Below are positions 5,251 to 61,234 of a stretch of 64,000 nucleotides of DNA, one piece after another; the stretch's first letter is position 1; each line of letters opens with the position of its first letter. The position numbers and the translations under genes are program-made. Below the pieces are notes generated by a model. It had not been told where the DNA came from. It saw only the letters and a list, made by a program, of their open reading frames with translations, and did not search any database. This DNA is from Dicyema japonicum (taxonomy: Eukaryota > Animalia > Dicyemida). The stretch is from positions 328,310 through 392,309 of the forward strand of contig RDEW01000015.1 of NCBI GenBank assembly GCA_011109175.1, in the 5' to 3' direction.

Positions 5251-5410
5251 ATTTTTTGAGAGACTGTCGGAGTAGAAGTCGGTTAGCATGTTCTACAGTT
5301 TCATATTACTTCTCCATCACTTAATTTACAGTGCTTTTTCTTTATAATAACTTACTTCAAGGACAGACATTAAAAGCTGTAGCTCCAAATATAAAAGCGG
5401 ACCTTCTAAG

Positions 5411-5475
5411 TAGCATACTTGTTAGTGCTGTTGCCTGTATCTCGATTAGCTGTGGGTTCGGTTCCCACACTGCTA
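5411..5475 (+). other. tRNA-like relic directly upstream of a CRE element
   Basis: TAGCA...TGCTA terminal pairing and T-arm-like TGTGGGTTCGGTTCCCACA; D and anticodon arms do not fold well. Confidence 0.3.
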
Positions 5476-5519
5476 CCTGTCGATAGATTCCTCTTTTCTC
5501 TTTGCCTTTTTCAATTCTT

Positions 5520-7790
5520 AAAAGGTGTCATGTGACCCATCTGTCCAAAAACGCTCAGTGCCAGGCCAACATGCAAAAACGATCTAGCTCTTCCTCACTC
5601 ACTGGATAAGTTCACAGATATGGATAGACGTGATGCTTGGAAAGGATGCATGTTCTTCCACCTTTGATGTGTCAGACTGTCGAGGAAGTCTTTGAAACCT
5701 TTGTCTTCTTGGATTTGCCACGATTGAGACCCAAACAATATGATTCCCTTCTAGGAGTTACTAAATCCCTTATGTCTGACCCTGTTTCTGGATCGCCTAC
5801 CAGTCACGTTACGTCTAAAGAAATTTTACTTCTCACATGGAGGTTGCGAGTACAGAGGCGTATTCCTTTGAGGATTCCAAAATCCGTGAGAGTGGTGGCG
5901 GCTGAGGCTCTTGCTTGTGCTATTGACAGGGATGCCTCGTCTTTGGAGAACAAGGATTGGATTCCCTTATTTCTCGCTCCCCTAATTGCACTTGGACTGG
6001 ACTCTAATCATCGAGGAGCTTCTACCGCTGCAAGACTTAGGAAATCTACTCAGTCGTTTAAGGATGAGAATCTTTCTTTTTTCCCTCTCGAGAGTCCTAT
6101 ATCGTGGAAACAAAGTTTTTTCTTCAAAATACGGTTGCAGCAAGCTAATGGATAGGCAGCAGTTAAGGCATTGTTTTCAACCGAGACCATCCTCTCAGTC
6201 ATCCCTGAATCATTTCTACTTTGAAGAATAAACATCCTCCCCTTCCATTAGATCTTAGAGAATTTTCAACACCATTAGACAGCCTCTCCCCCGTTTTATT
6301 TACCGGTCAAATCCTTCTCACCAGACAGCAGCGTGGGTGGATGGTTTACGCCCTGAGCACATTCAGAGACCTTTTTGTCATTCTTAACTTTGTGGCGGAC
6401 GCTCACTCTGTATCATCGTTAACCAAACTCGTAAACCCATTTTCATCTTGGAACATCCCCCGTGAACTCTTTTTCCTGCCCTATTGTTCTCTTCTCGAAG
6501 CTTGGTGTTGGAATCAGGCATATTGTCGTTGGAAACCTATTCCGCAAACTGCTTCAAAACTTTCGTGCTGGCGTGTCATCGATGATCTGTCTTCTGATCT
6601 GAAACCTGTTAACTCTTAGTGGGGGTCCGCGGCAGTTGCGAATATGTCATTCATGCCGCTCGTTCCTTTGTGAACTATTGTAAAAAGGATAACCCTGAAT
6701 TATTGTGAAGCTAGGCGTTTCTAACGCCTTCAATTCGGTGAGGAGAGACCATCTTCTTGAAACCGTTTTGAGGAGACCCCAAGAATTATCCACATTACGA
6801 ACCTCGCATACGGTATCCAACCCATCTCGTATCGGTGATGGACTATTAAATCATCGACTGGGTACAATATGGTTATTTTCTCGTCATTTCTTTTTTGCTT
6901 AGGCAGTTGATGAGGCCATCCGTTCGTGTGTGACGGCTTTCAATTGTTGGTATTGGACGGTGCTACGATTGGTGGATCTGCCTTGTCGGTTATGAAAAGT
7001 CTTTGAATACTTCTTACATTCTTGCCAATTATGGACTCGAGATTAATTCGAGTAAATCTGAAATTTGTAATCCGGGACTCTCGCATGATGAATACTTTAA
7101 ATAACGATACACGCTCATGTCTTTTCTCCCCGATACTGCTATTACCGATGTGGAACACCTTATGATAGTGGGCTCTCCCAGTCCCTCATATACGTAGTAA
7201 TAAAATATCGGAGATTTCTGGAGCCACCATTAAACTGCACGAACCTTTCCACATACTGTGTTTTTTTCTTCCTTCCAAGATTAATGTTTTGGGACGTTTC
7301 TCTCCTTGCTACCTCTTTCCGGAAAGCCTGGAGAACTTCAATATTCTTACCTCCAAATCTATCGAAGAAATTGTGAATATAAATTTCGATAACACTGGAT
7401 TGATGCAAGCACTCTTTCCCGTCAGATTTAGGGATATTGGCCTAACTTCTGTTGTTGACGTTTTCCTGCCATCCTTCCTGTCCCTTTATCATGCAACGCA
7501 TTTCTCATCCTGACTATTCTTCCAGATTTCTGCAAATCCTCCCTGGGCGACAAATTGCTGATGGGTTGAAGAGTTTTTCGGTGGCTTTTGAAGAAATCCC
7601 TATTGATATACTCCAACTGAATAACTGGACCGACATTTTGTACAAAAATATCATTCGACCGCTTTCACCGTCGGGCTTGCATTTTGGCAGCCTCTTCCCC
7701 TCACAGGGGTGCTTGGCTCAACGCGTTCCAATCATCGTCAATTGGTTCTCTTCCGGAACAGGACGCCCTCGTTAGCTCATAATTCTATCA
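5520..7790 (+). mobile_element. Degenerate CRE-like non-LTR retrotransposon
   Basis: CPIC zinc-finger start, RIPKSVRVVAAEAL, and RT fragments GVRGSCEYVIHAARS and LGVSNAFNSVRRDHLL typical of the CRE clade; many frameshifts. Confidence 0.7.
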
Positions 7791-8331: not shown

Positions 8332-9330
8332 ATGCTTAGAATGAATTTTGGATTATTTTTAGCTCGATCTCTCAGCTCCTCTTACAACAACGGGATAAAA
8401 AACCTTCTCATAATTGGAGGAGGTCAGATGGGCTCAGGGATTGCTCAGGTTACCAAATCACTCACAATTAGGTTTCAGCCATTGCCGGCTACAACATTAA
8501 CGTAGTTGACATGAGCACTGATGTTCTTGATAAAAGCAAGTCCACGATTAGCAGGGGGCTGAAACTGAGTGCTAGGAAGCTCAAATCTCTAGGAGCCTCT
8601 ACAGTTGTTTAAACTGTTTATTTTAGGACAAACTACTAATGGTTGAGTCTGCTTTGGAGAAGATTACATTTTCTACTGATTTTAAGCCTTTTGCTCCTTC
8701 CGCAGATTTGGTCGTCGAGGCAGTGTTGGAGAAACTCGACGTTAAAAAGAAAATATTCGGGGATCTCCAGTCTCTATGTGGCAAAGAAACAATTTTGGCC
8801 ACGAACACCTCATCCTTGCCAGTTGAAGCCATCATGGAAGGCCTCAGTGGACAAGATCGCTGTGCAGGGCTCCATTTCTTCAACCCAGTGGCTGTGATGA
8901 AACTAGTGGAAGTTATAAAGACATCAAGTACGAGTTCCTCCACCGTGGATCGACTTAAGAGTTTTGTCGAGTCCGTAGGGAAGACCTCAGTTCAGTGCAA
9001 GGACACTGCAGGATTTATCGTCAATCGACTTCTTTTGCCTTATTTGGGAGAAGCTATGACGATGTATGATAGAGGTGATGCCGAAATGAGAGATATTGAC
9101 ACGGCCATGAAGCTTGGGGCAAATTATCCCCTCGGTCCCTTTGAATTGATTGATTTCATTGGGCTGGATACGATCAAGTTCATTTTGGACTGTATGGGGT
9201 TTGTTTATTTGTAGTTTGGAGTAAGACTGAACCTGATAACCCCCAATTCAAGTCAGTCCCTATTTTAGACAAATTGGTGGCTGAAGGAAAGCTTGGTGTT
9301 AAAACTAAACAGGGATTCTATTCCTATTAG
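8332..9330 (+). CDS. HADH: 3-hydroxyacyl-CoA dehydrogenase (mitochondrial, short chain)
   Basis: IIGGGQMGSGIAQ Rossmann motif, DLVVEAV, NTSS, GLHFFNPV, GFIVNRLL and GPFELIDFIGLDT; three 23-nt GT-AG introns (8449-8471, 8604-8626, 9192-9214) restore a full frame ending QGFYSY*. Confidence 0.95.
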
Positions 9331-16440: not shown

Positions 16441-17034
16441 CACTGAGAGCAGTACTGTTCTCTCGTGTGGATTTGAACTATTCAATACTGAAGAAGTGTT
16501 AAAGTGAACACAGGTAATTAAATTAAAGGATGTAATATGAAATGGTAGGGTTTGACGAGTCTGGCAAAATATTTTGACCTCATGGTTTTAACACAGAATT
16601 TATCCATCAATCGGAACACCATCCCGACCATCTGGAAGTTATCCAATATACAATCGACCTCGAAGCCTGAGGACCAAATGATTCCTCCTTTTATAAACAA
16701 ATATCTCTCCTCTGCTCATCTAATAGAAGCTAATTTTCGATGTGATCCGCCAATATCTCACCATGATTTACGTTCAGCACGACTTCAAGAAGGATCTCAC
16801 GACAACCAACCCTAATAAGATTCATTCTGGAGAACCTACAATGTAATCTGGAACATCAAAAAACACATAGTATGCTATATTGGGCTTTCAACAGTTTCTC
16901 ACGTTTAACCATACTTAAAAGTCTTTTGACTCAATCCCAAGAAAAGTACTAGGAAAGTATTTGATCTGATATTCCAAGCAACTTTTTGAGGGACGGAAAG
17001 GAAGGGTCGTATCAAAAAATAACATTTTAAATTG

Positions 17035-17755
17035 GCCACGTGACACCATGTGGTGCTAAGTGACTAGTTGGACAAAAATTATTTTCTTTCCCTCCGATGG
17101 CGTCATTGGATCCACCTTACTGAGGAGACGTTCAATGCCTGCCCGGCATTAAGAGGATCCAACTATTCTTTTCCCTGTGGACAATTTCGTTACCTGGAGA
17201 CAATTTCTTACTATTATTATTTATTATAGAGCTTTTATACAAACAATTTGTTCTACCTAGTATTGAGTACGCCTGTGCTGCATGGATTGCCCCCTTATCA
17301 ATATCGTCACAGAACAAGCTGGAGGTCTTACAAAATCGATGTCTCAGGATTCTATTGAGATCATCGAAAAAAACGTCCATTTCGTTACTACGGAGAACAC
17401 TAAACGTCCCCCAATCATGGAATACCATACGGAACGTCACAGGGACTTCCTCAAGATGGCAAAGTCCCCTGACCATTCTCTTGTGCCGGACATCAAACTA
17501 TATATGGACGCTTGCCCGAGATATGAGAAGAAACTTTCCCTGTTGTGAAGATTAATCCAGGACTCCAAAACTAACCGCAGGAAAAGGACTGGTATGGAGA
17601 CCGGGATCACTTAATTAGACGGCAACTTTTATTTTCTTTCTCGTGATTTTGGGGTTAATAATAAGGAGACAAGTTCTGGAACGCTGTAACGAGTCAGGAT
17701 CAAGGAGTTAGTTAGATTGGTTACTCTTGGTCATTGAAATAAATTTAATTTTAAT
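17035..17755 (+). mobile_element. SINE-like element (family A) interrupted by a LINE insertion
   Basis: Head and body at 17035-17203 and tail at 17673-17755 match the uninterrupted copy at 53891-54135; 8-bp TSD GGAGACAA at 17196-17203 and 17665-17672. Confidence 0.75.
17204..17664 (+). mobile_element. 5'-truncated LINE (family B 3' end)
   Basis: LYKQFVLPSIEYACAAW and end ..RKRTGMETGIT*; 3' part matches 58630-58885; flanked by a TSD. Confidence 0.8.
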
Positions 17756-19344: not shown

Positions 19345-20465
19345 AATATAATTCACCTTTATTTAACAAACAATAAAAAAGTTAATATATTTATTAATCA
19401 ACAACCTTCCTCGCCTGCCTGTTCGCCAGCCTCCTCAGGCAGGTTCGATTCTGGTTGCTGAAACAACTCCGAGAGCGCATTGTCAATTGAACCTTCTGCC
19501 CATATGGCATCTCAGGGCTCTGCCTCCTATACTCCAGTGTCAAGCTCTTTAGGGTCCGCTTTAACACAGTGGACTGTAGATAGGCCTGAAGCTTCCTATC
19601 TACCCCCAACTGCTTCAGATAACCCTTGTGGTACTTTGTTGCAATTCCTTCCCACGTCATTACTATAGGAATAACGAGGACCTTGCAACCAAGCATCTGC
19701 CCCATCTCGATTGCAAGAAAGTCATACTTCCTTTTTTTCTCCACCTCCACAGTCTGCAAACGGTCTTGAGACGTGATGCCAACTTCTATGATAAGGACTT
19801 GGCCAGACTCCTTATCGTGTACCACAATGTCCGGTTTATTGTGCTTGACTAGCACCGAGGTACGGATAACACTGTCTACCTTAATTTGGACCCTGGTGTT
19901 CTCTACTACAGATTGCACCTTATGAGTCCGCAACTTTCTGGTGTGGCGAATACCATACTTATTGCATAGTAGAAGATGAAGACTCCTTACTACCTCGTTA
20001 TGCCTCCACACATAGTCGTGGCAGAGCATGGATCCACATCGAGTGGCTAAATGATCAACCGACATGCTCCTTGACTTACAGTGGGGACATGTATTTGTTG
20101 ATCGACCCCAAAAAATATTGCGGTCTTGCATATACGTGTACAACGCCTCCGATCGAGGTGAGTTGTCACCGTATTTTAGCCATATTGTCGACGACTTAAG
20201 GTCGACATGTGGGTTGTCCAATGCTCTGAAAAGGACTTTATGAAGGCTTTTTAAGTTGATCTTTTCCATCAAATTATTATATTGTAATTCGATCAACGCC
20301 TTCACATTTACTAGCCCACCATCATCAACACCATACTTAGCAGACAAAAAAGGTCTGATAGTGCCTAGGTGGGTTGCCCGTGTTTTCTCGGTCGTTATTA
20401 TGGCGTGCTTCCTAGCAGACACACTTGACCCAGCTATCAGGGTCTCGTGCATTCGCATTAGGATA
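19345..20465 (-). mobile_element. 5'-truncated RLE-type non-LTR retrotransposon (R4/NeSL-like)
   Basis: Long ORF with CCHC knuckle (CPHC..VDHLATRC), RHNEV and PD-(D/E)xK nuclease (KPDIVVHD..LIIEVG..EKKRKY); 3' end very similar to 56090-56652. Confidence 0.85.
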
Positions 20466-20590
20466 CGCTCACTTAGTTGGACTACTCCACACAGTCCACT
20501 TGATATCACTCTGACCTCGAGGACTAGGATCACTTAATTTGCTGAAGACCCTCTTTCTAACCAGTTGATCCTGAGGCAATAATTAATAAT
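20466..20590 (+). mobile_element. Short LINE 3' tail
   Basis: ..TSRTRIT*, AGGATCAC..GATCCT stem and AATAATTAATAAT tail. Confidence 0.5.
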
Positions 20591-22480: not shown

Positions 22481-22759
22481 GATCCGGTACTTTGACTTGT
22501 GTAGATCACGAATCCAAGAAGCTGATGGCAGACCACTAATCCGTCGACCAAGGGCGACATGTACCCCCGGTGGAAGAGAGATAATGGTTCTTTTTCGAGA
22601 TGCTTAAAGAGCATTCTGAGCGCCTCCAGAATTGTTGTATCAGGTGAACCACATGACGCCACGCTAAAAATTTTAAATTTATTATTATTAGCAATGTCCG
22701 CGGAACCAGAAAAGTTAACTAATTTGAGATTCCACTTTTGCCATCCATCTAATTTATTT

Positions 22760-23400
22760 ATTGACCCGGGATCACCGAGAAAGAAAGACAAAAGTAATGT
22801 CAACTAGTTAGGTGATCCCAGTTCCCACAACCAAACATGCCATCCTAAGTCTGTGTGTCTCCATTGTTCCCACTGTCGAACGGAAATGACTTTTTTGATC
22901 CTTGCATAGGAAGCCGATTGGGGACGTAAATTTTTTAGCCAACTGATTTTCTTTTGCGTGGAACAGTGAGAGGCATCTTCCTCGCAAATGCGTAGAAATC
23001 CGGAGCCACATCTACGAGTTGTAGATTCAGTCAGCAGAAGAGGTATTTCTGTTTCATATTGTGGTCCCAGTATACGTGTTGTACTCCTTTGCAATAAGTT
23101 TAGTTTTTGGATAGTGGCCTCTGATAACGCGAATCTCCACGCAGCAGAAACATATTCCACAGCCTGGCGGTATATGATTCCGATTGCTTTATTCATATTC
23201 GCTGGGGTCTTCTGGATAAGGGCCCGTGTGACATTCAATTTCTGTTATCCTTTGGTGAAGACTTGTTTGGCATGGTAGGTAAAATTAGCAGCCTGTCGTA
23301 TGTCAATCCCAGGATTGAGGGTTTCTTGTGACAGGTATCCGAGTATGTCCGAACAGGGTTTGTTTCAATGTCGCCACATAGCAGGATCAAAAATCCAGAA
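22760..23400 (-). mobile_element. LINE family D 3' portion
   Basis: YRQAVEYVSAAW and ..SPIGFLCK..VGTGIT*, with a GGGATCAC/GTGATCCC tail. Confidence 0.8.
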
Positions 23401-24099
23401 CAAATATGACACGAGACGGAGTCGGAGGCACATAGCTTACGGAAACCCCCAATAGGGGAAGTTATTGGCTCTTTTCGTTCCTTTCCGGAATGAGTGACAC
23501 CTTATCGGGTGAGCCACAAGATACCATGTTAATTACATAATCACTAATTTTTAATTTCAAACATAAATTGCAACTAGAATAATAATATTTGTATAAATAT
23601 TATTTTGTATAAAATTAATTTAATTTAATATTCGAATCACGTTAATTTATGGTTGGTTGTCGTATTTAAGAATTATTTCTATCAAATGTGCTTTATGTGT
23701 CATTTAGAGCTCAAAAAAGACACTGAGGACCAAGTTATTCTTGGCAAAAAAGAGAAAACAGAACCGATCTCTCCCCCATTGGATGAGGCTTAAGACAGGA
23801 AACAGGATTCGTTATAATAACAAGAGGAGGCATTGGAGACGTACAAAGCTCAAGATATAAATAACTTTGATTTTTGTTTTGTCATATTTTTGATTTCTTT
23901 TTACCATCTTTAAAGACATTTCCTGTTTTTTTAGCATAGCTGAGGGCCACAGACAAAGGATCGCACTGTTAATTGAGATTACTGGAACAACAAACTTTTT
24001 CACTATACTTTGTCTCTCTTTCTCGGTGACCACAGAATTTTAAATTTCCCGTTTTTGGGTGACAAACTTCCAACTTTTCTACTTTTTGTTTCCAGCAAA

Positions 24100-24456: not shown

Positions 24457-24528
24457 TGGAGATACTGGGAATCGAACCCAGGACCTCCCGCATGCTAAGC
24501 GGGCGCTTTACCACTAAGCCATATCCCC
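24457..24528 (-). tRNA. tRNA-Ala (AGC)
   Basis: 72-nt cloverleaf GGGGATA...TATCTCCA with G3:U70, anticodon arm CCCGC-TTAGCAT-GCGGG, GTTCGA T-loop and downstream TTTT. Confidence 0.97.
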
Positions 24529-28508: not shown

Positions 28509-28830
28509 GATTTATTTTTAGATTCTACGGCCTCATGGTGTCATGTGGTACCATGTGGCTACATGATTGAAGATTTATCTTCCTTCCCTCTGATGGTTTC
28601 ATTGGATTCATCTTACTCAGGAAACGCTCAATGCCTGGCCGACATTCAAAGGGATCAATTTATTTACCGGAGAAATTTTTGTTCCCTGAAGACGAGTTCT
28701 GGAATCGACCTCAGCTTCCCTGAAAACGTCTTCTGGATCACTGTGCTTGAATAAGAATCTGCTATAACGCAGTAGGATTAAGAAATTAGTTAGTTTGGTT
28801 TTACCCGTGGTCTTTGGAATAATTTAATTT
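28509..28830 (+). mobile_element. SINE-like family A copy (long subfamily)
   Basis: Non-coding repeat homologous to 37205-37430 and 17035-17755; LINE-like tail TTAGTTAG..GGAATAAT. Confidence 0.7.
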
Positions 28831-28986
28831 ATTTGAACAGTTATTGAAATTTGTATGTCGATATATTTTATTGGAATCAATTGTCTACGGATCAGATAGC
28901 CTACACTTTTTCAGTATAGTGAAAATCGCTACAAAAGGTGGTAACTATTTTTGTTTTCTTTTGTTCATTCTTTAAGAATGAAAAAA

Positions 28987-31861: not shown

Positions 31862-34800
31862 ATGGACCAAGTAGAACAAAACATACTAACAGGCACAAGC
31901 GTCAACCCAGAAAATGCACAAATTGGGGGAAATAGATCGATTGAAATATTTATATGCTGTAACAATTTGGGTTTGATCTAAACTAATGCTCAGAATTTGA
32001 AAATGAGATCAATGTCCTCAATAGAGAGGTAGCCCCACAAATAAGGAATATTTGTATGGAAAGATTTGGAGTTGAATTTAGAGTTTTGCTAATTTTATCA
32101 TTTCAGTTACTCGATTTGCACTTTCTGAGTGATTTGATGGCAAAAAGCATGATTTCGAAGGTTGAAATGGAAAAAATTAGAATTTTTGAACTCGCCAGAT
32201 GCCTTTCGGGAATGGGAACCCCAAAAGTCCTTGTATTTGGAATTCTTTACCGGATAGATAATGATAGGTCACAGATACGGGGAGTTCTCGATTCCTCTCT
32301 CCTTTTCTGTGGACGAATTCGAAACGATTAAAGCGAGTCTCGAAAAGCAGATTTTTTTCTCGTCAAAGTGGCTGCCTGTGATTGAAAACGTCTACCAACT
32401 GAATGATAATTATGTTCCCCCTAATTATATTTTGGACGAAAGAAAGCTGGCCTTGCTTGACGAGGACCTGAAAAACGTGATAAAATTTGATATTTCAGAA
32501 ACCCGAATTTATCGGAAATCACCGGCAAACTGATGGCAGAAATCTAGTTTGGAATATTTTATACAAATCTTTGCAAAATTTTGGGGAAAATGAAATCAAC
32601 GAGGATTTCAAACTGCAGAACATTTTATCAGGTAACTTTGTGGTAAAATTGCGGAATTCGGAAAAGAAATCTGTGCCTCTATTTTTGCCAGCAGTAAACG
32701 GAAAACTGACCGCGACGGAGAAATTTTACTTTTTTATCGCAATTTGGTTGACTATCGATACCACGTGTCTCTCCCAGGGGCAGAAAAGCACATGGAAGTA
32801 CTAATCCCTTATTAGGCAGGTTTATTCCACAAAAAGCGACGAACGTTTTCTCGACACCTTTAAGGAGGAGTTGTTGGACCAAATCAACGAAAAATGGACT
32901 CGGCCTAATATTTCCCCAGACTATCAGTTCGAAATGGAAACTTTGTGGAGAGGAAGCAACGGGATAAATCCCCAAACCGAGGTACCTGGTATTTCTCAAA
33001 TTCAGATGCATCAAAAATATTTGCTGGATTTTAAAAATTTATTCCTCAAGAAATTCGGTTCCATCTTTGACTCTCTAAGTCCGGGGGATTTTTCTCCTAA
33101 ACAACTTTTGGTGGACGAAATTAAAGCGACCATCGACTTTTGCTTCAACGAGGAGAAAAACTTTAGTGACTGCAGCAGGAATTTGGAGTTTATTAGAAAT
33201 TACATTTACGCCCAAGACAACCAGCCTTTGATTGTTCACGGAAAACACGGATGCGGAAAAACGGCTTTTTTAGCATCGGCTTGCGCTCATATCATTCAAA
33301 CCAACGACTTTTCCGTAATTCCCGTTTTCTGCGGAATCACACGTGGCGGATTGAATCCAGAAATTTTGTTGAATAGAATCGGCCAGCAGATCTCGATAAT
33401 CGAAGATAATAACTACGAGTTGTGCAATATATTTGGGGATTGTCCCCCGCATCCTCAGCTTACTAAAAAATACGTGATATTTCTCGATTCCGTAGATTGT
33501 ATGATCGACGACGAGTCCTTCTCGAAAGTATTGTTGGGGGTAACATCTTCAGTGGCTTAGATCTATGTTTCTTGCAAACATTAAAGTCATAATTTCAGTG
33601 AACGAATCAAGGTTGCCTAAACTCACAGAAATTTTTGGAATTTCAGTAACAAACGACCTCTGCTTGGACGAAATGACGATGGATGACTCCTTTGACTTCA
33701 TTTCCAGCACTTGGAAGAAGTCCAGCGTTGTTTTAACCGAAAGTCAGTCCAGAACACTGAAAAAACAGCTAGAATCGACAGAAAGGACACCTCTTTTACT
33801 GAGGTTGCGTGAATACTTAAAAAAGTCTTGTTTGTCAAGAATATTTGATGTCCGGTATTTCAGATGATCAGATAGCCCTCCCCGAATCCACGGAGACTAT
33901 GATAAATGACCGTCTACAAAAATTAGAGGATCGATTCGGTCGACTTACGATTTCTACGATAATTTTAAACTTGTTATCCGTGACTATTGGATTGAGTAAC
34001 GCGGAGATGGAAGATTTGTTGTCATTATCAGACGAGGTTATCCACTCAATGTGACAATTTAGGTCCTCGACGAACTCTATGGAGATGTAAAGCCCACAGT
34101 GAGACGATTTCCCTCAATTCTGTGGAGTGCGATTCGTCTGTCCCTTGAAAAGTTTCTGGTTTCCTTTAACAGCCTAAATGTGGCTGTAAACCGAATAAAA
34201 CACGAAATCATAACTCTTGTATGCAGGAAGAGGTGAAGCATTCCTGACTTTTAGGTATTCAAAAAACGAAAATCTCTTAAAATCTGTTTATGAAAATCTT
34301 GGCGAGTATTTTTCTGGGTTTGGCTCTCCTGATAACTCAGAGGGGGACAAAAATAAACGAGACCGATTCATTTCACAGCAGAATTTCGCGAACCCCTCGA
34401 ATAAACCGTTTTTAAATTGGCGGAGAAACGAAGAGCTTCCAATGCTCTGAAAAACGCCAACAGATTTGCTGACTTGGAAAGACTGGTTTCATTCAATTTT
34501 GATTGGTTCACTTCCAAACTAATGACGGCGCCGTCCTCTCACTTGCTTGGAGACATCCGACTCTGTGAGCTTGCGGAATGTGACTTGCTGTGCAATGCGG
34601 TGCTGAAAAGCTACAAGGAAACCAAAGGAAACTTTAATTATTTCAGGAACGAATTGATCAGCAAATTACTCCCATTTATTTCAGAATCCGGCAGAATCAG
34701 AAAAATAATCAATTTTATCGACCAAATTGAGATGAACTTTGGATTAGTCCCGCTTTTCAGTCATTCCTGTGAGCAGGACAATTATTTGAACAAAATTATC

Positions 34801-37156
34801 GACACTGAAATTGTCCCACAAAAGCTGTCAATCAACCCGAAAGAGTAAATCTCAATATTTTAGCAAATTAGAATTATGATTAAAGCCACCAACTCCCCGG
34901 ATATTATTCTTCACGGAATTGAATCCGGAAAAACGGAGAAGATCACCACAGCAAGAGGAAACTTTTACGCCACCAAGGACGGAGAAAGAATCCTTATCTT
35001 CGACAAGACAATCGGGAATGCAATCAGCGTATTCAATCGGAATGGCATATTCCTTGGCTTTTTGATCCCCTCAAAGTATATTATCCCAAAACTTCAAAAG
35101 CACGTGTTAGAAATAGTAAACGGAATTTTGTATCTTAGATGTTTGTAGGAGACAATCTAGCCATCATCCAAGTGATCGGAAAGGACAATTTTCTGGCAGT
35201 CGCGGACGTAACGGAATGCAAATTCTTGCGAATAATCCCAATCTCTATAAAGCTGAACAAATGCTACTTGGTCGACGAAAACTTTATTTGCGGATGTTCT
35301 GAAAACAGTTTGGCTAAGATTTCACTAAACCAACTCGCTGTCGTTTACTTGGAGACTGATTATATGATAAAATACTCATATTTCTCAGAAGACGGGAAAT
35401 ACCTACTGGTCTTGTCCTCAGACGAGAGTTTTGTGGATTTAGCCTCACTTGAGGACCTCGCTTTCGTCAATAGAATCAATTTATCCCAGTTTTCGTACAT
35501 TTTAGAGATCTCTTTGACCAAAGAGAACAAATATCTCATTTTAACGACACCGAAAAAACTCCACGTGATTTGCCAGCAATCCGGAGAATTCATCTATCAA
35601 ATTGAAGTCCCAAAAAACTTGCCCCAGCGATTTACTTTCCCTGACTTGAACGAAGTGTCCCTTGCCATAAGTAATCTGACTTTGCTCGCTGATTCGGAGT
35701 TATTTGCGTTTTCTTACTTTTGCTACGTGTTTGTCGTCCACACAGCCTCCGGGAAGATTATGCACAAACTCAGATGCCCCCTGGGACAAATAACAGATAT
35801 TTATAAAATCGAAGATTACAAACTGGCCATTAAACTGAAGAATCAAAGGTTTTTAGTTTTGTTCGACCTCAATTCCCTTGGAAAACCCTTCAAACTGACT
35901 CCTCAGCTGTACGAACCAGTTAAAAACATAAAAGTGATTATTCCCCCGTATTTTAGATATTCGGTAACAAGGCCGTCGTTAGTTGGGAGAACGGAAAAGT
36001 TTTGGGGGTGTTGTCCAAGTGTAGCGGAAAATATAGCAATATTTTGAGTCACCCGGAAATAGTTGAGGAATACGTTCTTTCCGTGAATGAGGATATTTTA
36101 TTCGTCTCCACCAAATCACGGAAAATTTATATATGGACTCTCACAACTGGAAGTGTCATAAAGGAGTTCACGAGCTATGAGGGATCTCTTGTGGCGGCCA
36201 ACAGTCAAAATTGTGTCATAATGATCGACAAACACCCCGAAGATGAGTGCTACAGCATTTGGAATTTTACTTACAAAAATGGAGAGTTCAACAGCACTAA
36301 GACGAACACTTCACTTCAGGAACTTGGCACGTGTCCTCTAATTTGTTGTAATGACAATTATTTGGTGTTCACACTCCCTGTTAAGGAAAATGGTAACATT
36401 ATCAGCATTTATGATCTGAAAACAGAAAAATGGTCTACATTGAGTCTTACAGACTTTCATTTGAATTATTCTGATGGTCTTTCCGTTGAATGCCGGGAGT
36501 ACAGGGAAGATGGCGTGATATTAATTCACGGAATTTATCAATCATCTGGCAAAATCATATTTTACGATGTTTTTAAGGATTCAGTTATTTCTTGTGTTGA
36601 GCACGTGGACCCAATTGATTTTGAAAAAAGTTTTGTTGACCTGGAAAATTCGCTATTTGTCACTGAAAACTCAAAAATTCTACTTTCTGACGGAAGCACT
36701 GCCTTTGAAGAGTTCGGCGCTCATTTTGTGGGATTTTCCGAAAATAGGGGGACTGTTGTATTCTTCAGTGAATGTGAGATATTTTCGATTTCAACCTGCG
36801 ACTGGAAAAAAGAAGGGAAAGTCAAATTGGGGGTCGAAATCAAATATGCGACAATTAGTAGGGACGACTGTGTTTTATTTGGATTAAACAACGGAAATGT
36901 TGGTTGCCTAAAAATTGTGGACTTTCAAAATAACGAGTTGAAGCGTTCACTGTCAGTAGAAAGTGTCCCCCTTCAATATAATGCGATTTTACACGAAGTT
37001 CCGTCAACCAGCAGCGAATACGATACTTTGTTGCAGAAACTGTCCTTTCAGGGTAAAAGAAAGCCTGTTGATGAAAATGTCAGAATGAATAAGGAAAATT
37101 TGGAAAAACTTACTAATATAGCAATCAGAATTAATTCGTTAAAAATTAATTCTTAA
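31862..37156 (+). CDS. NACHT and WD-repeat protein, NWD1/NWD2-like
   Basis: N-terminal block similar to NWD1/2 (ERFGVEFRLLDL, IGHRYG), Walker A GKHGCGKT, Walker B IFLDSVD, GLSNAEMEDLLSLSDEVL, FNFDWF, and a beta-propeller-like C-terminus; about 14 introns of 22-27 nt; one 1-nt deletion near 34440. Confidence 0.85.
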
Positions 37157-37204: not shown

Positions 37205-37430
37205 TTCATGTTGTGTGGTACTTGATTGAAGATTTAACTTCCTTGCCTCTGATGGTGTCATTGGATTCATCTTACTCAGGAGACGCCCAATGCCTAGACG
37301 GCATTCAAAATGATCAATTTATTTGTTCCAGTGGGAGAAATTTTTTCTCCCTGGGGCCGAGTTCTGGTATCGACCTCAGCTTCCCGGACAATGTCTTCTG
37401 GATCACTGTGCTTGAGCTAGGGTTCTGATA
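37205..37430 (+). mobile_element. SINE-like family A copy lacking the tail
   Basis: High similarity to 28530-28755. Confidence 0.7.
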
Positions 37431-48944: not shown

Positions 48945-50689
48945 ATTTTTTAAATATTTTTGTAAATAATATTTATATTTTTATTCAATAATAATTCAGT
49001 CCTTCCGTAATGTTTCCGTTACTCAACTCAGCTTAGGCTAATTGGTGTTTTGCCTATTCCTCCTCTTCCCTTTCCTATTAAAGTGGCGTCCTGTGATTCA
49101 CCTGTTTCAGGTCGTACAAAAAAAGGATCATTTGTTCTCTCCACTGAAAAGGTTTCCACAACTGCAAGGAATGGATGTCTTTTACTTTTTATGCTGGTTC
49201 CGGAGACTTGTGTGACGTTGAAGGACTCTGTGCTAGTGGAAACTGGATACAGTTAACTATTTGTCTACTGTTAACTTATTTCTATGTGTATTCGTGGTTA
49301 ATAAATTAAATTAATTAATCTCAGCTTAGGCAGAATTCACACTTTAAGGAGTAAAGAATATAATCCAGACCTGTTGTTGTTATCTTTTCGAGTTCTTAAG
49401 TTCATATTTTTAGCTTGTATTTTGGTAAGTTATCGAAATATCTAAGATTTTGAGGAGTTATTGAATTGTTTTAGATAGTACTGTTGGCCTTTTTTAATAA
49501 TTTTCTTATTCGTTCGAGAAGTGCTTCAAGAGCCATAGACTATGACCGATGACTATGTTGGAGGTTTTCTGCATAAATTGTTGATGTCTGCCAAAATTAA
49601 TTTTATGTTTATATTAGAAGCAATCAAAATTATATTATACACGTGCAAATTATGACAAATAGTCTTTGTCCAAACTTTCTAAGACTGATAGATTAAAGTG
49701 GTAACGCAGCTCTGGTGCACTATGACACGACTTAGTATCTTCATCCCCTCAGTATGGATGCAACGTCCCCCTTCTTGGACTTAGAAGTTATCGGATACGC
49801 GAACTCGAAAATAAGTATTCGGAATGGTCGAGTAATTTTTGTTTTTTAATTAAAAACACTATTCCTTAAATTGAAACGACGGAAGCAGACCGCACAAAGA
49901 ACTGTCGTATAATAATTCCTACCAGAGCGATCGTGTTTCGCGAGGACCTTAGCAAAATTATGTCTTGGGTACTTCCTCCTAAGAGGCAAATCGGGCTCTT
50001 GGCTTCCTCCACCGGACCAATTATCATTGATTCTATATATCTAAGATGCCCAGTTTATTTTCCTTCTGGAAACTTCGGACTTGACAAAGGTTATGGCAAG
50101 AGACCGGATGACATGACGACCATGCCATGGAATCAGGGAAGCTATCTTGTTTGAGACTCACTGTGTAAGGATCTTTTTCAAACGCGAATCTGTTCATGTC
50201 ATCGTTGTGCTCTTGTTCCACAGCGGTTACTGATGAAGATTAGAGGAAGAAATACAGTAGTATTAAAGATCGGTTAGCCGTCCAGCGATGGGGACGTCTG
50301 CCGTTCTTGGCCCCACCACGTCAAAGTTTATCAGGCCGATCGGTGACTGCCGAAGGGAGAGTCTAGAATTAAACGACGGCTCATAAAGAACATTGGGTTC
50401 TTGGTCATGAGGGGTAACTCCCATTTGTGCTCAAGCCTGAAAGTCATAATGGAACCCTTTGGCTTTCATTGACATTTTGTTTTTTAATTGAATTAAATTA
50501 AAATTAACTTCTTCCAGTGGTTAAATATACTAAAATCCTTGGAGTCACATTTGACACGCTTCTCTGCTTTAACAAGCAAGTTGAACAACCTTGCAATAAA
50601 GAAAAGTCAAAATCCAAGATCCTTCGAGTAGTAACTGATCACTTGAAGGGCCAACTTGTGGAGTGTCTAACGCTCCTGTACAAGCAGTT

Positions 50690-51769: not shown

Positions 51770-53160
51770 TTCTATTTCCTGTTTCTTTTGATTCCATAAA
51801 TTCGACAAAGATGAAGATGGATGCACTTTATCACTTCATTATATCTTCGGAGATAATCACTGTTTAGCATTTTGCCACACTGACTGGCTAAATGATCAAC
51901 AGTTTTCTTGCTTTTTTTACAATGGTTGCAAATGACCCGTGTGTGCAAAAAACAAATTCCTATCTTGCAAAAGACAGTACAATGCTTCGCTCCGTGGGCC
52001 GTTATTTCCTTTGGATAACCATTCTGAGGAAGTATATAGGTCGACATTTGTTTCATCAATACATTTGAACATAATTGAGTGTAGTGTTCTGCAATAAATT
52101 TTATTTAATAAATATTTTTTCTGAGTGTCCTTGAGGGACTTAATATCCATGCTTTCCCTGTCGGCAATTGCATATTTAGAGGCAAGAAATCCTGCGATTG
52201 TAGCCAAGTGCCATTTTTTTGTTTTTATTACTCGCAGAATCCCCGACCTTCGCAAACACACAGTCGACTGTTTTTCCAAACTTTTAAAAAACTGGAAAAG
52301 TATTAATTCGCTCTTTAATGAAATCGAGGAAAGTCCTCTTCCAAAAGTCTTCCTGTCCAAATACAGCCTCTCTTTATTTGCAGGTTTGAGGTGCAACTTG
52401 AGTGACGTAAGCAGTTGGCGTATTTGTTGGTCAATATCATCAAATTCGTATGGTTCAATATTAATTAATCCAATATAATAGTAGGGACATTGAGAGTTCA
52501 TTTATTGCGCGAAATAAGTTTACAGAATTTAACTTTGTTTTTGAAAGCATGGTTATTTTTCTTAACATTTTCAAGTATGGACTCCATGACTTTGTTTTTA
52601 AGAACATTACTTCCCTCGTCTTCAAAAACACCCAAATATCGATATCCACTGACTTCTTCTAGAGTCTCACAACATGATAACGATTTAACATTAGAGACTG
52701 TGATTTCCGAATTTATCTCCAAGCCGGCAACATGAAAGAAATCGCGAACAACTTTCATCATTCTAATAACAGTATCTTATTTTAGCCCAAATATCTTTAG
52801 GTCATCAATGAACAACAAATGATTGGTAGAATAAGCCAGACTATTAGGATCCTCTAATTAATTTGGAGTCTTGGGAACATAGAGTTAAGAATCCTGCTCA
52901 AGGGTTCCATTACCATAACAAATAGTTGAGGGGATAATGAATTTCCTTGCAGAATTCCACATCCCAGCTTTACAGAACCAATTCTTCTTCCATCTAAGTG
53001 GAGATTTACAGTCCACTTTTTGACTATGGTCTTTACAAAGTTAACAATCCAACGGGATATTCCTGAACAGTCCGATACATGAAATGAAAATTTATGGTCA
53101 ACAGAATCAAAGGCCTTCTTCACATAACCCAAGCAGAATAAAAGGCGTTTCCATACTCCT
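51770..53160 (-). mobile_element. RLE-type (R4/NeSL-like) element, RT plus CCHC
   Basis: KKAFDSVDH, GILQGNSLSPQLF, LLFIDDL, GNNGPRSEALYCLLQDRN and CNHC..VDHLASQC. Confidence 0.85.
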
Positions 53161-53795: not shown

Positions 53796-53890
53796 TTGAT
53801 TTTATACTTTATGCGGTAAAAAAAGATTAAAAAGATTAAGCATTACACATTCAAAAACTTTTAAGTATATTAAGTTTTATTAAATAATAA

Positions 53891-54135
53891 ATTTATTCCA
53901 AAGATCAAAGGTAAAACCAAATTAACTAACTCCCTGATCCTGACACGTTCTAGCGATTCCAGAACTTGTATCTAGGTAATGAAATTGTCTCCCGGTGGAA
54001 AGAATAGTTGGATCCTTTTGATGCCGGCCAGGCATTGGGCGTCTCCTTAATAAGGTGAATCCAGTGACGCCATCAGAGTGAAAGAAAACAAATTTTTATT
54101 CGACTAGCCACACAGCACCACATGGCACCACACTA
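53891..54135 (-). mobile_element. SINE-like family A, uninterrupted copy
   Basis: Head TGGTGCCATGTGG, pseudoknot body and stem-loop tail with GGAATAAAT. Confidence 0.75.
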
Positions 54136-54153
54136 CTAATTATTCGAATCGAG

Positions 54154-54266
54154 TCTTTTCACAGGGAGACAATTTCGTTACCTGAAGACAAGTTCTAGAA
54201 TCGTTGAAACGCGTCAAAGATCAGGGAGTTAGTTAGTTTGGTTTTACCTTTGATCTTTGGAATAAT
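54154..54266 (+). mobile_element. SINE-like family A, 5'-truncated copy
   Basis: Matches the tail half of 53891-54135 in the opposite orientation. Confidence 0.75.
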
Positions 54267-54539
54267 TTTATTTTTTTATTTATTAAGGACACTAAGATTT
54301 AAAGTTATATAATTTTACAAGAGAATATTTAATTTTGTAAAAAGCATAATTTTTTTGCATGTTTTAAATATAAAGTCCTGAAAATTCTCTTAATGACCAT
54401 ACAGAATAACCTCTTGAGTTATCTATAAAATGCCCCAGAATACAAGAATCCTCAGGAAATTTCTAGAATCCACAGCTTTTGTTTAAAATTTTCTATTAAA
54501 CTTGCTAAGTTAGTTTTTTATATTCGTCAATAGTTTTTG

Positions 54540-54985
54540 ACGCATTTCGAGACAACTCCATCCCAGGTCATAATAACCAGTGGGATAATCTTGACAATCG
54601 TAGAGAAGCGAAAGCTCACTTGCGAGGAGGTTCTACATGTGACATTTTTCTACTTCCACCTGTTTTAGGCGATCCTGAGATGTAATTCCCACTTTTATTA
54701 GAATTATCTCAATCTTGATAATGTTTGAAAATATCTAATTTGTTGAACTGTCGTTTTAGTCAGAATCGACGTATCGACTTTATCTCAACATTCTGTGTTA
54801 ATAGAATCAACTGAACTGAACGCCCCTTCAACTTTCTAGCCTTTTTGATTCTATATACTCTGCATAGATGGAAATGTAAGCATTCTACAACTTCATTGTG
54901 TCTTCGGATGTGATCATTATTTAACATTCTACCACACTGAGTGGTCAAGTGGTCAACAGTCTTCCTGTTTTTCTTGCAATGAAAG
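54540..54985 (-). mobile_element. Diverged RLE element 3' fragment
   Basis: TTQCGRML..RRHNEVV and nuclease remnants. Confidence 0.7.
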
Positions 54986-55204: not shown

Positions 55205-55645
55205 CTGCTCTCGGTATTCTCTATAAGCAATTCATCGAGCCATCAATCAGTTACGCCTGTGCAGCATGGGGAATTAATCTTTCGTGGACTAACCGTCTTA
55301 AAGTTGATAACACCCTATGTCGAGCGGCAACTACCATAATGCACATCGCAAAGCTGAACAACATTCCACCCAGTCCCTTTGACCACCTTATTGAGCAAAA
55401 CGGCAAGAGCTTCTTGACGTTAACCCTCCAGCAGGACCTGTCGTCGACAGTCTGTCCTGTATCAAGTTTCCAGAAGCACATCACCCCAGTTAGCTTTCTC
55501 ACGAACACTGTCCCCCGCCCATACCGTGAATGTGTTGGGTCAAAAGTCCAGCATCGGGAGAAGCTGAGAAAGCTCTCAGGATTGTCGGGATCACCTAATT
55601 AATTTCAACAAGATTAACTATTGGTGTTTTTGGGTTAAATAAAAA
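55205..55645 (+). mobile_element. LINE 3' end (D-like)
   Basis: LYKQFIEPSISYACAAW, ITPVSFL and a GGGATCACCTAA tail. Confidence 0.75.
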
Positions 55646-56089
55646 AACACCCAAAGTCATTAAACCAGATAATTATGATCAATAAAACACGTTTTATTTA
55701 ACAATAAAATTATGATCATCGATTAAAACAACTCAGTAATTTTGTTGGTCCTAAAATTTCATTTTACTTTGGATAAGATTTTCGACCTCTTCTATCATGG
55801 CGATCATCTCCCACATTTTCCCTAACCTTGAGTTAATGTTAAAATATTATAAATTTGTGCTCATTCTGACTGATAAATACCAACTCTGACGAACGGTGGA
55901 AAATAAAAAAAATACTCCCCTTTTGGAGGTCTTTTCTTATTGCTAAAATATGAAAAAATTAAGCTTTGCCAGGATCTACATCATTACAGAGTGATTGTCT
56001 TAAGGAAACTAAAGCCGAACTTGAAGACTATGCGAAATTTAATAAAGATTTTGATACTCTTTATTAAAAATTTATGTAGATTTTTTGAA

Positions 56090-61150: not shown

Positions 61151-61234
61151 TGACACGTTTGGTTTGGGGAACTGGGATCACCTAACTAGTTGACTTTACT
61201 TTGTCTTTCTTTCTCGTGATCCCGGGGTTAATAA
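61151..61234 (+). mobile_element. 84-bp LINE-D 3' stub with TSD
   Basis: ..GTGIT*, GGGATCAC/GTGATCCC stem, and 12-bp TSD ATGTGGAAGCGA at 61139-61150 and 61235-61246. Confidence 0.85.

Follow-up and report, generated by a model that had tools for sequence, protein, structure and literature searches.

The question raised by this locus is what kind of RNA domain recurs in the short repeats of Dicyema japonicum, and whether that domain cuts itself. The window analyzed here, meaning the whole 64,000-nucleotide stretch of contig RDEW01000015.1, is eukaryotic, has a G+C content of ~38% and contains LINE fragments and one tRNA gene. An initial annotation had flagged four copies of a SINE-like family in which complementary segments follow the strand order of HDV-like ribozymes around a non-canonical core, and had proposed a divergent or new self-cleaving motif or another functional pseudoknot. 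The conserved pseudoknot, the helix order and the non-canonical core all stand, but the motif is better described as the 5'-terminal domain of a LINE than as a new invention of the SINE. As judged from its sequence, this 63-nt HDV-type pseudoknot is real, conserved in the short repeats and inherited from LINE 5' ends; on present evidence it is not a new ribozyme class.

Flagged copies and divergent relatives

All four flagged copies are found where they had been placed and belong to a single repeat family (nhmmer E ~1e-47). The most complete description concerns the copy at 54009..54071 on the minus strand (c54), where the helix order P1-P2-P3-P3'-P1'-P4-P4'-P2' and the individual helices are as annotated: P1 GGCGTC/GACGCC (6/6 pairs), P2 TGGATTC/GGATCCA (7/7), P3 CCT/AGG (3/3) and P4 ATGCC/GGCAT (5/5), with J4/2 reading CAAAA and the whole motif spanning ~63 nt. 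On the plus strand, the copy at 17099..17161 (c17) retains P1 6/6 (two of them G.U) and P2 7/7; that at 28595..28658 (c28) has 6/7 pairs in P2, 4/5 in P4 and, as had been remarked, a decayed P1 with 4/6; and that at 37254..37317 (c37) has P1 6/6, P2 5/7 and P4 5/5. The variability of the P4 loop (TGGCC twice, TGCCC and TAGAC) was likewise recovered, as was CAAA in J4/2 of three of the four copies, the exception being c17, where TAAGA has replaced it and the C is lost. The motif indeed lies inside its element, starting 62-75 nt from the element's 5' end. Its strand is fixed by the G-U pairs, since ~17 G.U cells become C.A mismatches on the opposite strand, and for the flagged copies this is also the LINE sense strand. 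At 32871-37156 (+) lies a series of long ORFs that match NTPase (ATPase_2) and beta-propeller (WD-like) domains weakly; it resembles a large host gene, and its 3' end adjoins the c37 element.

A covariance model built from the motif and run over the window without filters, with a second model for confirmation, added four divergent copies and brought the total to eight. Two of these lie inside elements: c5 (5524..5586, +) is a decayed copy preceded by a CT-rich spacer and, further upstream, by a tRNA-like head at 5403-5476, and c49 (49085..49131, +) is divergent, having neither P4 nor the J4/2 C and keeping P2 at 7/7 through compensated changes. The other two are of a LINE type. In c22 (22584..22660, -), an endonuclease (APE)-type LINE begins ~7 nt before the motif, which lies ~100 nt upstream of the endonuclease ORF of this decayed element (Exo_endo_phos_2, E 2.5e-5), and shows a G1.U wobble, P2 GUGGUUC/GAACCAU, P4 AUGCU/AGCAU and J4/2 CGAAAAA. 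The c23 motif (23465..23525, -), with P2 GUGGCUC/GAGCCAA and J4/2 CGAAAA, stands at the head of a LINE with an internal deletion, which closes at ~22760 with a G-I-T-stop and a stem-loop. Because the similarity of c22 and c23 to the other copies ends, on the upstream side, within ~7 nt of G1, the motif can be placed as the 5'-terminal domain in LINEs. At least five lineages are represented among the eight copies with a common fold. A further covariance-model match at 55619-55676 was rejected as a motif copy, being a LINE 3' end. LINE 3' ends in the window, at 17590-17665 (+), 22820-22760 (-) and 55585-55660 (+), carry GGGATCAC(C/T)TAA (G-I-T-stop), a stem-loop and an AATAAA-type end, and the G-I-T-stop and stem-loop are likewise present at 61174-61223.

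Beyond the window, a pattern scan of metagenomes gave 0 matches, no credible motif copy was found in ~227 kb comprising three Octopus sinensis, three ENA, one Littorina and one Elysia loci, and 63 kb of O. sinensis DNA held no copy of the repeat family, so that the fold draws no cross-species support from the ~227 kb of outside DNA. Exact look-up of ten window ORFs in a protein collection found none of them, and protein searches with the ORF downstream of c5 returned nothing at first and later only weak, short relatives.

Chance level and conservation of the fold

Helix order alone carries no significance at this locus. A topology descriptor with P1 = 6, P2 = 7, P3 = 3 and P4 = 5 pairs, G.U allowed and flexible loops and junctions, matched the window 21 times, as against 9-24 matches (mean ~16) in dinucleotide shuffles, which is chance level. 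Energies of the nested fold are equally unremarkable against shuffles (z-scores between -1.2 and +1.6). Rfam gave no support either: the curated HDV-type covariance models found no match, no ribozyme family reached the gathering score anywhere in the window, and relaxing the threshold to E 10 near c54, c5 and c22/c23 brought up none. With topology and fold energies ordinary and no Rfam match, the argument for the fold depends on its conservation in different lineages.

All eight copies can be drawn in the HDV helix order as a nested double pseudoknot. In a gap-free structural alignment of the eight made by hand, with P2' aligned with the structure in view, 137 of the 159 cells are paired. In P2, the long-range helix that creates the knot, 48/56 cells pair, and four of its seven pairs have changed on both sides and still pair (shuffle p 0.0025-0.007), the variants running from UGGAUUC/GGAUCCA in subfamily A to GUGAUUC/GGAUCAU in c49 and the two LINE-type forms given above. 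P4 also covaries (p ~0.04): in c22 a C-G pair has become U-A, and c23 forms another hairpin altogether. In P1 and P3, which are conserved and accept G.U pairs, these eight copies show no covariation beyond shuffles, and the only double change in P1, in c23, is explicable by two CpG decays. The pseudoknot, that is P1 together with P2, therefore rests on conserved complementarity as far as P1 is concerned. A second, model-made alignment, which was not fitted to P1 and in which P2' of subfamily A is mis-registered, has 84% of cells paired versus 79% in shuffles (0/500 reach the observed value) and seven pairs changed on both sides (reached by 5/500), and pairing falls to 33-52% when the partners are slid against each other. 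It is important to note that the copies are few (n = 8), interrelated and drawn from one window, which makes these figures supportive rather than conclusive.

Elements probably assembled from the two ends of a LINE

The architecture of the flagged elements points to the source of the motif. The c54 element, of subfamily A (53888..54139, -), consists of a head, a spacer, the motif, a 5' UTR stretch and a LINE-type tail ending GGAATAAATTTA. It is adjoined by an inverted partial copy of its 3' part (54154..54276, +; ~87% identical to 53879-54003), which makes c54 resemble a foldback and was probably inserted separately, 5'-truncated and in reverse orientation. The c17 element, also of subfamily A (17031..17747, +), is bounded by the target-site duplication ATTTTAA at 17024-17030 and 17748-17754 and is interrupted at 17209-17665 by an inserted LINE that lacks its 5' part, resuming at 17666; the inserted LINE 3' fragment (+) has a ~12 bp target-site duplication of its own, GGAGACAAKTTC. 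Subfamily B is represented by the 309-nt c28 element (28518..28826, +), flanked by ATTTATTT at 28510-28517 and 28827-28834.

The head of subfamily B, at 28533..28558 (+), is a truncated LINE-type motif reduced to the 5' strands of P1 and P2. The same type of head opens c54 (~54139-54110) and c17 (~17031-17060) and recurs at 55023-54982 (-), there fused to LINE coding sequence. These heads, 60-70 nt long, start with a leader followed by a match to the first 17-19 nt of the LINE-type motif in c22 and c23, and the complete motif together with ~25 nt downstream of it is common to the flagged elements and the LINE 5' UTRs of c22 and c23. At the other end, the tails of c17 and c54 align to the G-I-T-stop LINE 3' end at 55540-55665 (p = 0/300 and 0.003, respectively), and that of c54 also to the LINE 3' end at 22745-22880 (p = 0.007); the tails of subfamily B gave no significant alignment to LINE 3' ends. 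The 5' heads at 17034-17055 (+) and 28528-28550 (+) are near-palindromic, CCACGUG-ACAC-CAUGUGG being the c17 example, and a short hairpin might fold from them at the RNA's 5' terminus.

The label "SINE-like" holds only loosely, the head being a truncated LINE 5' end and not a small-RNA gene. Rfam gave no tRNA, 5S or 7SL match on c54, and a 5S-derived head was rejected on this ground. Runs of 4-6 T occur within all four flagged copies and an AATAAA-type signal at the 3' end, which favors transcription by pol II rather than pol III. Since copies of the motif stand at LINE 5' ends in c22 and c23, what had been called a SINE can be read as a LINE-derived non-autonomous element, and on sequence grounds we classify the flagged elements as retroposons of this kind, not as small-RNA-headed SINEs. 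We also considered the Ceph-domain of Ceph-SINEs, but the one Ceph/RTE fragment that PMC5786205 quotes does not belong to the motif. Upstream of c5, by 47 nt, the tRNA-like sequence at 5403-5476 (+) scores 17 bits with the Rfam tRNA model, below threshold, and suggests a tRNA-headed SINE family sharing the spacer-plus-motif body. An intact tRNA-Ala(AGC) gene (71.5 bits) lies amid LINE fragments at 24457-24528 (-).

Probable retention of an RNA structure, and the question of cleavage

HDV-like ribozymes have a P1 of ~7 bp that starts at the cleavage-site G with a G.U wobble, and a P1.1 in which L3 pairs with the two bases that follow P1', usually as two G-C pairs. Measured against this, the description of the core as non-canonical was accurate. 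P1 has 6 bp, opening with G1.U in five of the eight copies (c17, c28, c5, c22 and c23) and with G1-C in c54 and c37. J1/4 is CA in 7/8 copies and AA in the decayed c49, which with the L3 sequences does not give the usual P1.1: the short L3 of the SINE copies (5 nt; UAUUA, UACUG, UACUC) offers at most one U-A pair and, because its first base is U instead of the G of the LINE type, no G-C pair is possible there. An L3 beginning (U)G would permit G-C, with or without U-A, in c22, c49 and c5, and G-C alone could form in c23; across copies L3 ranges from 4 to 13 nt. The catalytic C expected at the start of J4/2, with purines after it (C-N-A-A), is present as C-GAAAAA in c22, C-GAAAA in c23, C-AAAA in c54, UC-AAA in c28 and c37 and GC-AAAAA in c5, the LINE-head form resembling the C-G-A-A of HDV, and is missing in c17 and c49. 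Finally, copies of such ribozymes in retrotransposons begin at the cleavage site, and here not one of the eight has G1, the predicted cut site, as its first base: the LINE heads have a similar leader of ~7 nt before it (UUAGCGU, UUAACAU), and 62-75 nt precede it in the SINE copies. Leaders of related sequence are also found before c49 and c5, both inside elements, so that the leader does not come from the target site, and its retention before G1 implies that the RNAs copied into DNA were not cut there.

The reading that we favor, with a probability of about 0.6, is that the motif is a LINE 5'-terminal RNA domain that was carried into LINE-derived non-autonomous elements, its fold being kept as RNA structure. 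What is seen directly is the LINE-head homology, the LINE-type tail, the target-site duplications and the compensated pairing, chiefly of P2 and P4. A nested double pseudoknot in HDV-like helix order would thus have been the 5'-terminal domain of one LINE family, and the short elements would be built from a short leader with the truncated first ~20 nt of the motif, a CT-rich spacer, the complete motif, ~25 nt of LINE 5' UTR and the LINE 3' end, which the LINE machinery would use for target-primed reverse transcription. The fold would be kept because master elements need the RNA structure. A role at the 5' end or as promoter may fall to the truncated head copy, by analogy with Pr77 of L1Tc and its dual promoter/ribozyme nature. 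The LINE-head version may act as a self-cleaving ribozyme now or may have done so in the past, a tentative proposal with the odds somewhat against it. The internal SINE version most likely has little or no cutting activity, and for the flagged SINE copies self-cleavage is doubtful, given the missing Rfam match, the missing P1.1 and the upstream sequence kept in 8/8 copies.

The alternatives differ in what they make of the same features. Conservation could stem from the youth of the elements or from a function of the DNA itself, such as that of an internal promoter of the Pr77 kind, the pairings being incidental and no RNA structure selected. The chance-level topology, the ordinary fold energies and the lack of covariation in P1 and P3 fit this, as does the palindromic GGATCC in P2, which makes the two P2 strands direct repeats of each other as well, and the persistence at the 5' end of a truncated head that is unable to form the knot. 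It nevertheless seems unlikely, because P2 keeps 6-7 pairs in c49, c22 and c23 although both strands differ there from the SINE version (through A-U to G-C, U-A to C-G and G-C to U-A changes), because P4 changes from C-G to U-A in c22 and is a wholly different hairpin in c23, and because sliding the partners destroys the pairing. We consider it quite unlikely, in turn, that the internal SINE motif is an active HDV-like ribozyme that would cut 5' of GGCGUC and release an RNA with a 5'-OH, detached either from the head or from read-through transcripts of the host. Its helix order, the C followed by AAA in J4/2 of three of the four SINE copies and the G1.U wobble and CGAA of its LINE-type relatives are compatible with such activity, and the ribozyme of L1Tc (L1TcRz) is active with a P1.1 of a single base pair (PMC3185411), active copies being carried by NARTc and SIDER2 (PMC3185411, PMC4035085). 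Against it stand the absence of a G-C P1.1, the 5-nt L3, the 6-bp P1, the lost J4/2 C of c17, the lack of an HDV-type Rfam match even at E up to 10, and the fact that cleavage would strip from the retrotransposition template an upstream sequence that is conserved, with 0/8 copies beginning at G1.

To two further possibilities we give a low probability. The fold might be functional and never have been catalytic, serving as a platform for LINE proteins, an exonuclease block or a support for translation, its likeness to HDV being purely topological. A non-canonical L3/P1.1 core in every lineage, the variable length of L3 and the ~7 nt leader before G1 even in LINE heads argue for this; it is made improbable by the way in which the LINE heads unite a 5'-terminal site, G1.U, J4/2 CGAA and a possible G-C P1.1, all features of proven retrotransposon HDV-like ribozymes (PMC3185411). 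Conversely, the LINE-head form could be an active minimal HDV-like ribozyme whose P1.1 is one G-C pair, whose J1/4 is CA and whose P1 has 6 bp, and the short elements would have split a promoter/ribozyme module. The truncated 5' head would then act as promoter, and the full internal copy would serve either to remove that head once transcription is over or as a non-catalytic structural domain; this version, too, appears improbable.

The favored reading, a LINE 5' domain retained as RNA structure, can be placed among known systems. HDV-like ribozymes at LINE 5' ends that are inherited by short derivatives are established for R2, RTE and L1Tc/ingi elements. To these the present locus adds an animal case in which the fold is now interior to an abundant short repeat, with a truncated copy left at the 5' end, a split that separates the portion needed at the 5' terminus from the portion kept as RNA fold. 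The closest parallel is L1Tc/ingi Pr77 (L1TcRz), which places an HDV-type fold at the 5' end of an endonuclease-type LINE. As with the L1Tc carriers of trypanosomatids (NARTc, RIME, SIDER1 and SIDER2), the fold is common to a LINE and to short LINE-derived elements; P1.1 is weak, as in L1TcRz; and the two tandem head signatures of SIDER2 recall the truncated head plus full motif found here (PMC4035085). A dual promoter/ribozyme role has been proposed for Pr77 (PMC3185411, PMC4035085, PMC3383444). Unlike the present motif, in which G1 follows ~7 nt of leader in the LINE heads and 62-75 nt of element in the SINE copies, the L1Tc ribozyme starts at +1 of the element and has been shown to cleave in vitro; the host here, moreover, is an animal and not a trypanosomatid.

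The LP-SINEs of gastropods and bivalves are similar in build. As described by Matetovici et al. (2016, PMC4758252), they are short retroposons flanked by target-site duplications whose head is the first ~70 bp of a LINE 5' UTR, in which a CT-rich region can follow the head and a polyA signal lies near the 3' end. The Dicyema elements share the LINE-5' head, CT-rich spacer, target-site duplications and polyA signal of that description, and the sharing of LP-SINE bodies with tRNA-headed SINEs, also reported there, may be compared with the tRNA-like head of c5. They differ in the internal position of the complete motif, the 5' end having no more than a truncated copy, and that paper proposes a promoter role for the head and no RNA fold. 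If the 70-nt domain were the LP-SINE/LINE head known from molluscs, insects, fish and turtles, an unexplained conserved head would gain an explanation as an RNA fold, and the motif is a concrete candidate reason for the strong conservation of some SINE bodies and LP-SINE heads. The combination of a LINE 5' part with a LINE 3' part also agrees with the model of Kojima (2018, PMC5786205), in which SINE bodies arise from the 5' parts of bipartite non-autonomous LINEs and in which it is noted that a ribozyme within a SINE would cut off the head; the donors in that survey, in contrast, belong only to the RTE and Vingi clades, and no conserved pseudoknot is described. In R2 and the R2-derived SIDEs, a 5' HDV-like ribozyme is likewise kept in internally deleted non-autonomous derivatives, but R2 is site-specific for rDNA, has a restriction-like endonuclease and possesses a canonical P1.1 and L3 (PMC3414825, PMC3774820).

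Some further coding remnants in the window deserve mention. LINE C-terminal ORFs at 19394-20533 (-), 51917-52501 (-) and 54850-54980 (-) encode a CCHC knuckle followed by a KPDIVV...IIEV motif and, by sequence, look like a restriction-like endonuclease of R2/R4/Dong type; identity of such ORFs (e.g. 19394-20533) is 70% with Octopus sinensis proteins and 35-46% with proteins from microsporidian annotations (Vairimorpha, Hamiltosporidium, Dictyocoela). An intronless ORF of 191 aa at 8639-9214 (+) contains both domains of 3-hydroxyacyl-CoA dehydrogenase and, at ~52-60% identity to many animals (~60% at most) with no close cephalopod match, may be a retrocopy or a divergent paralogue.
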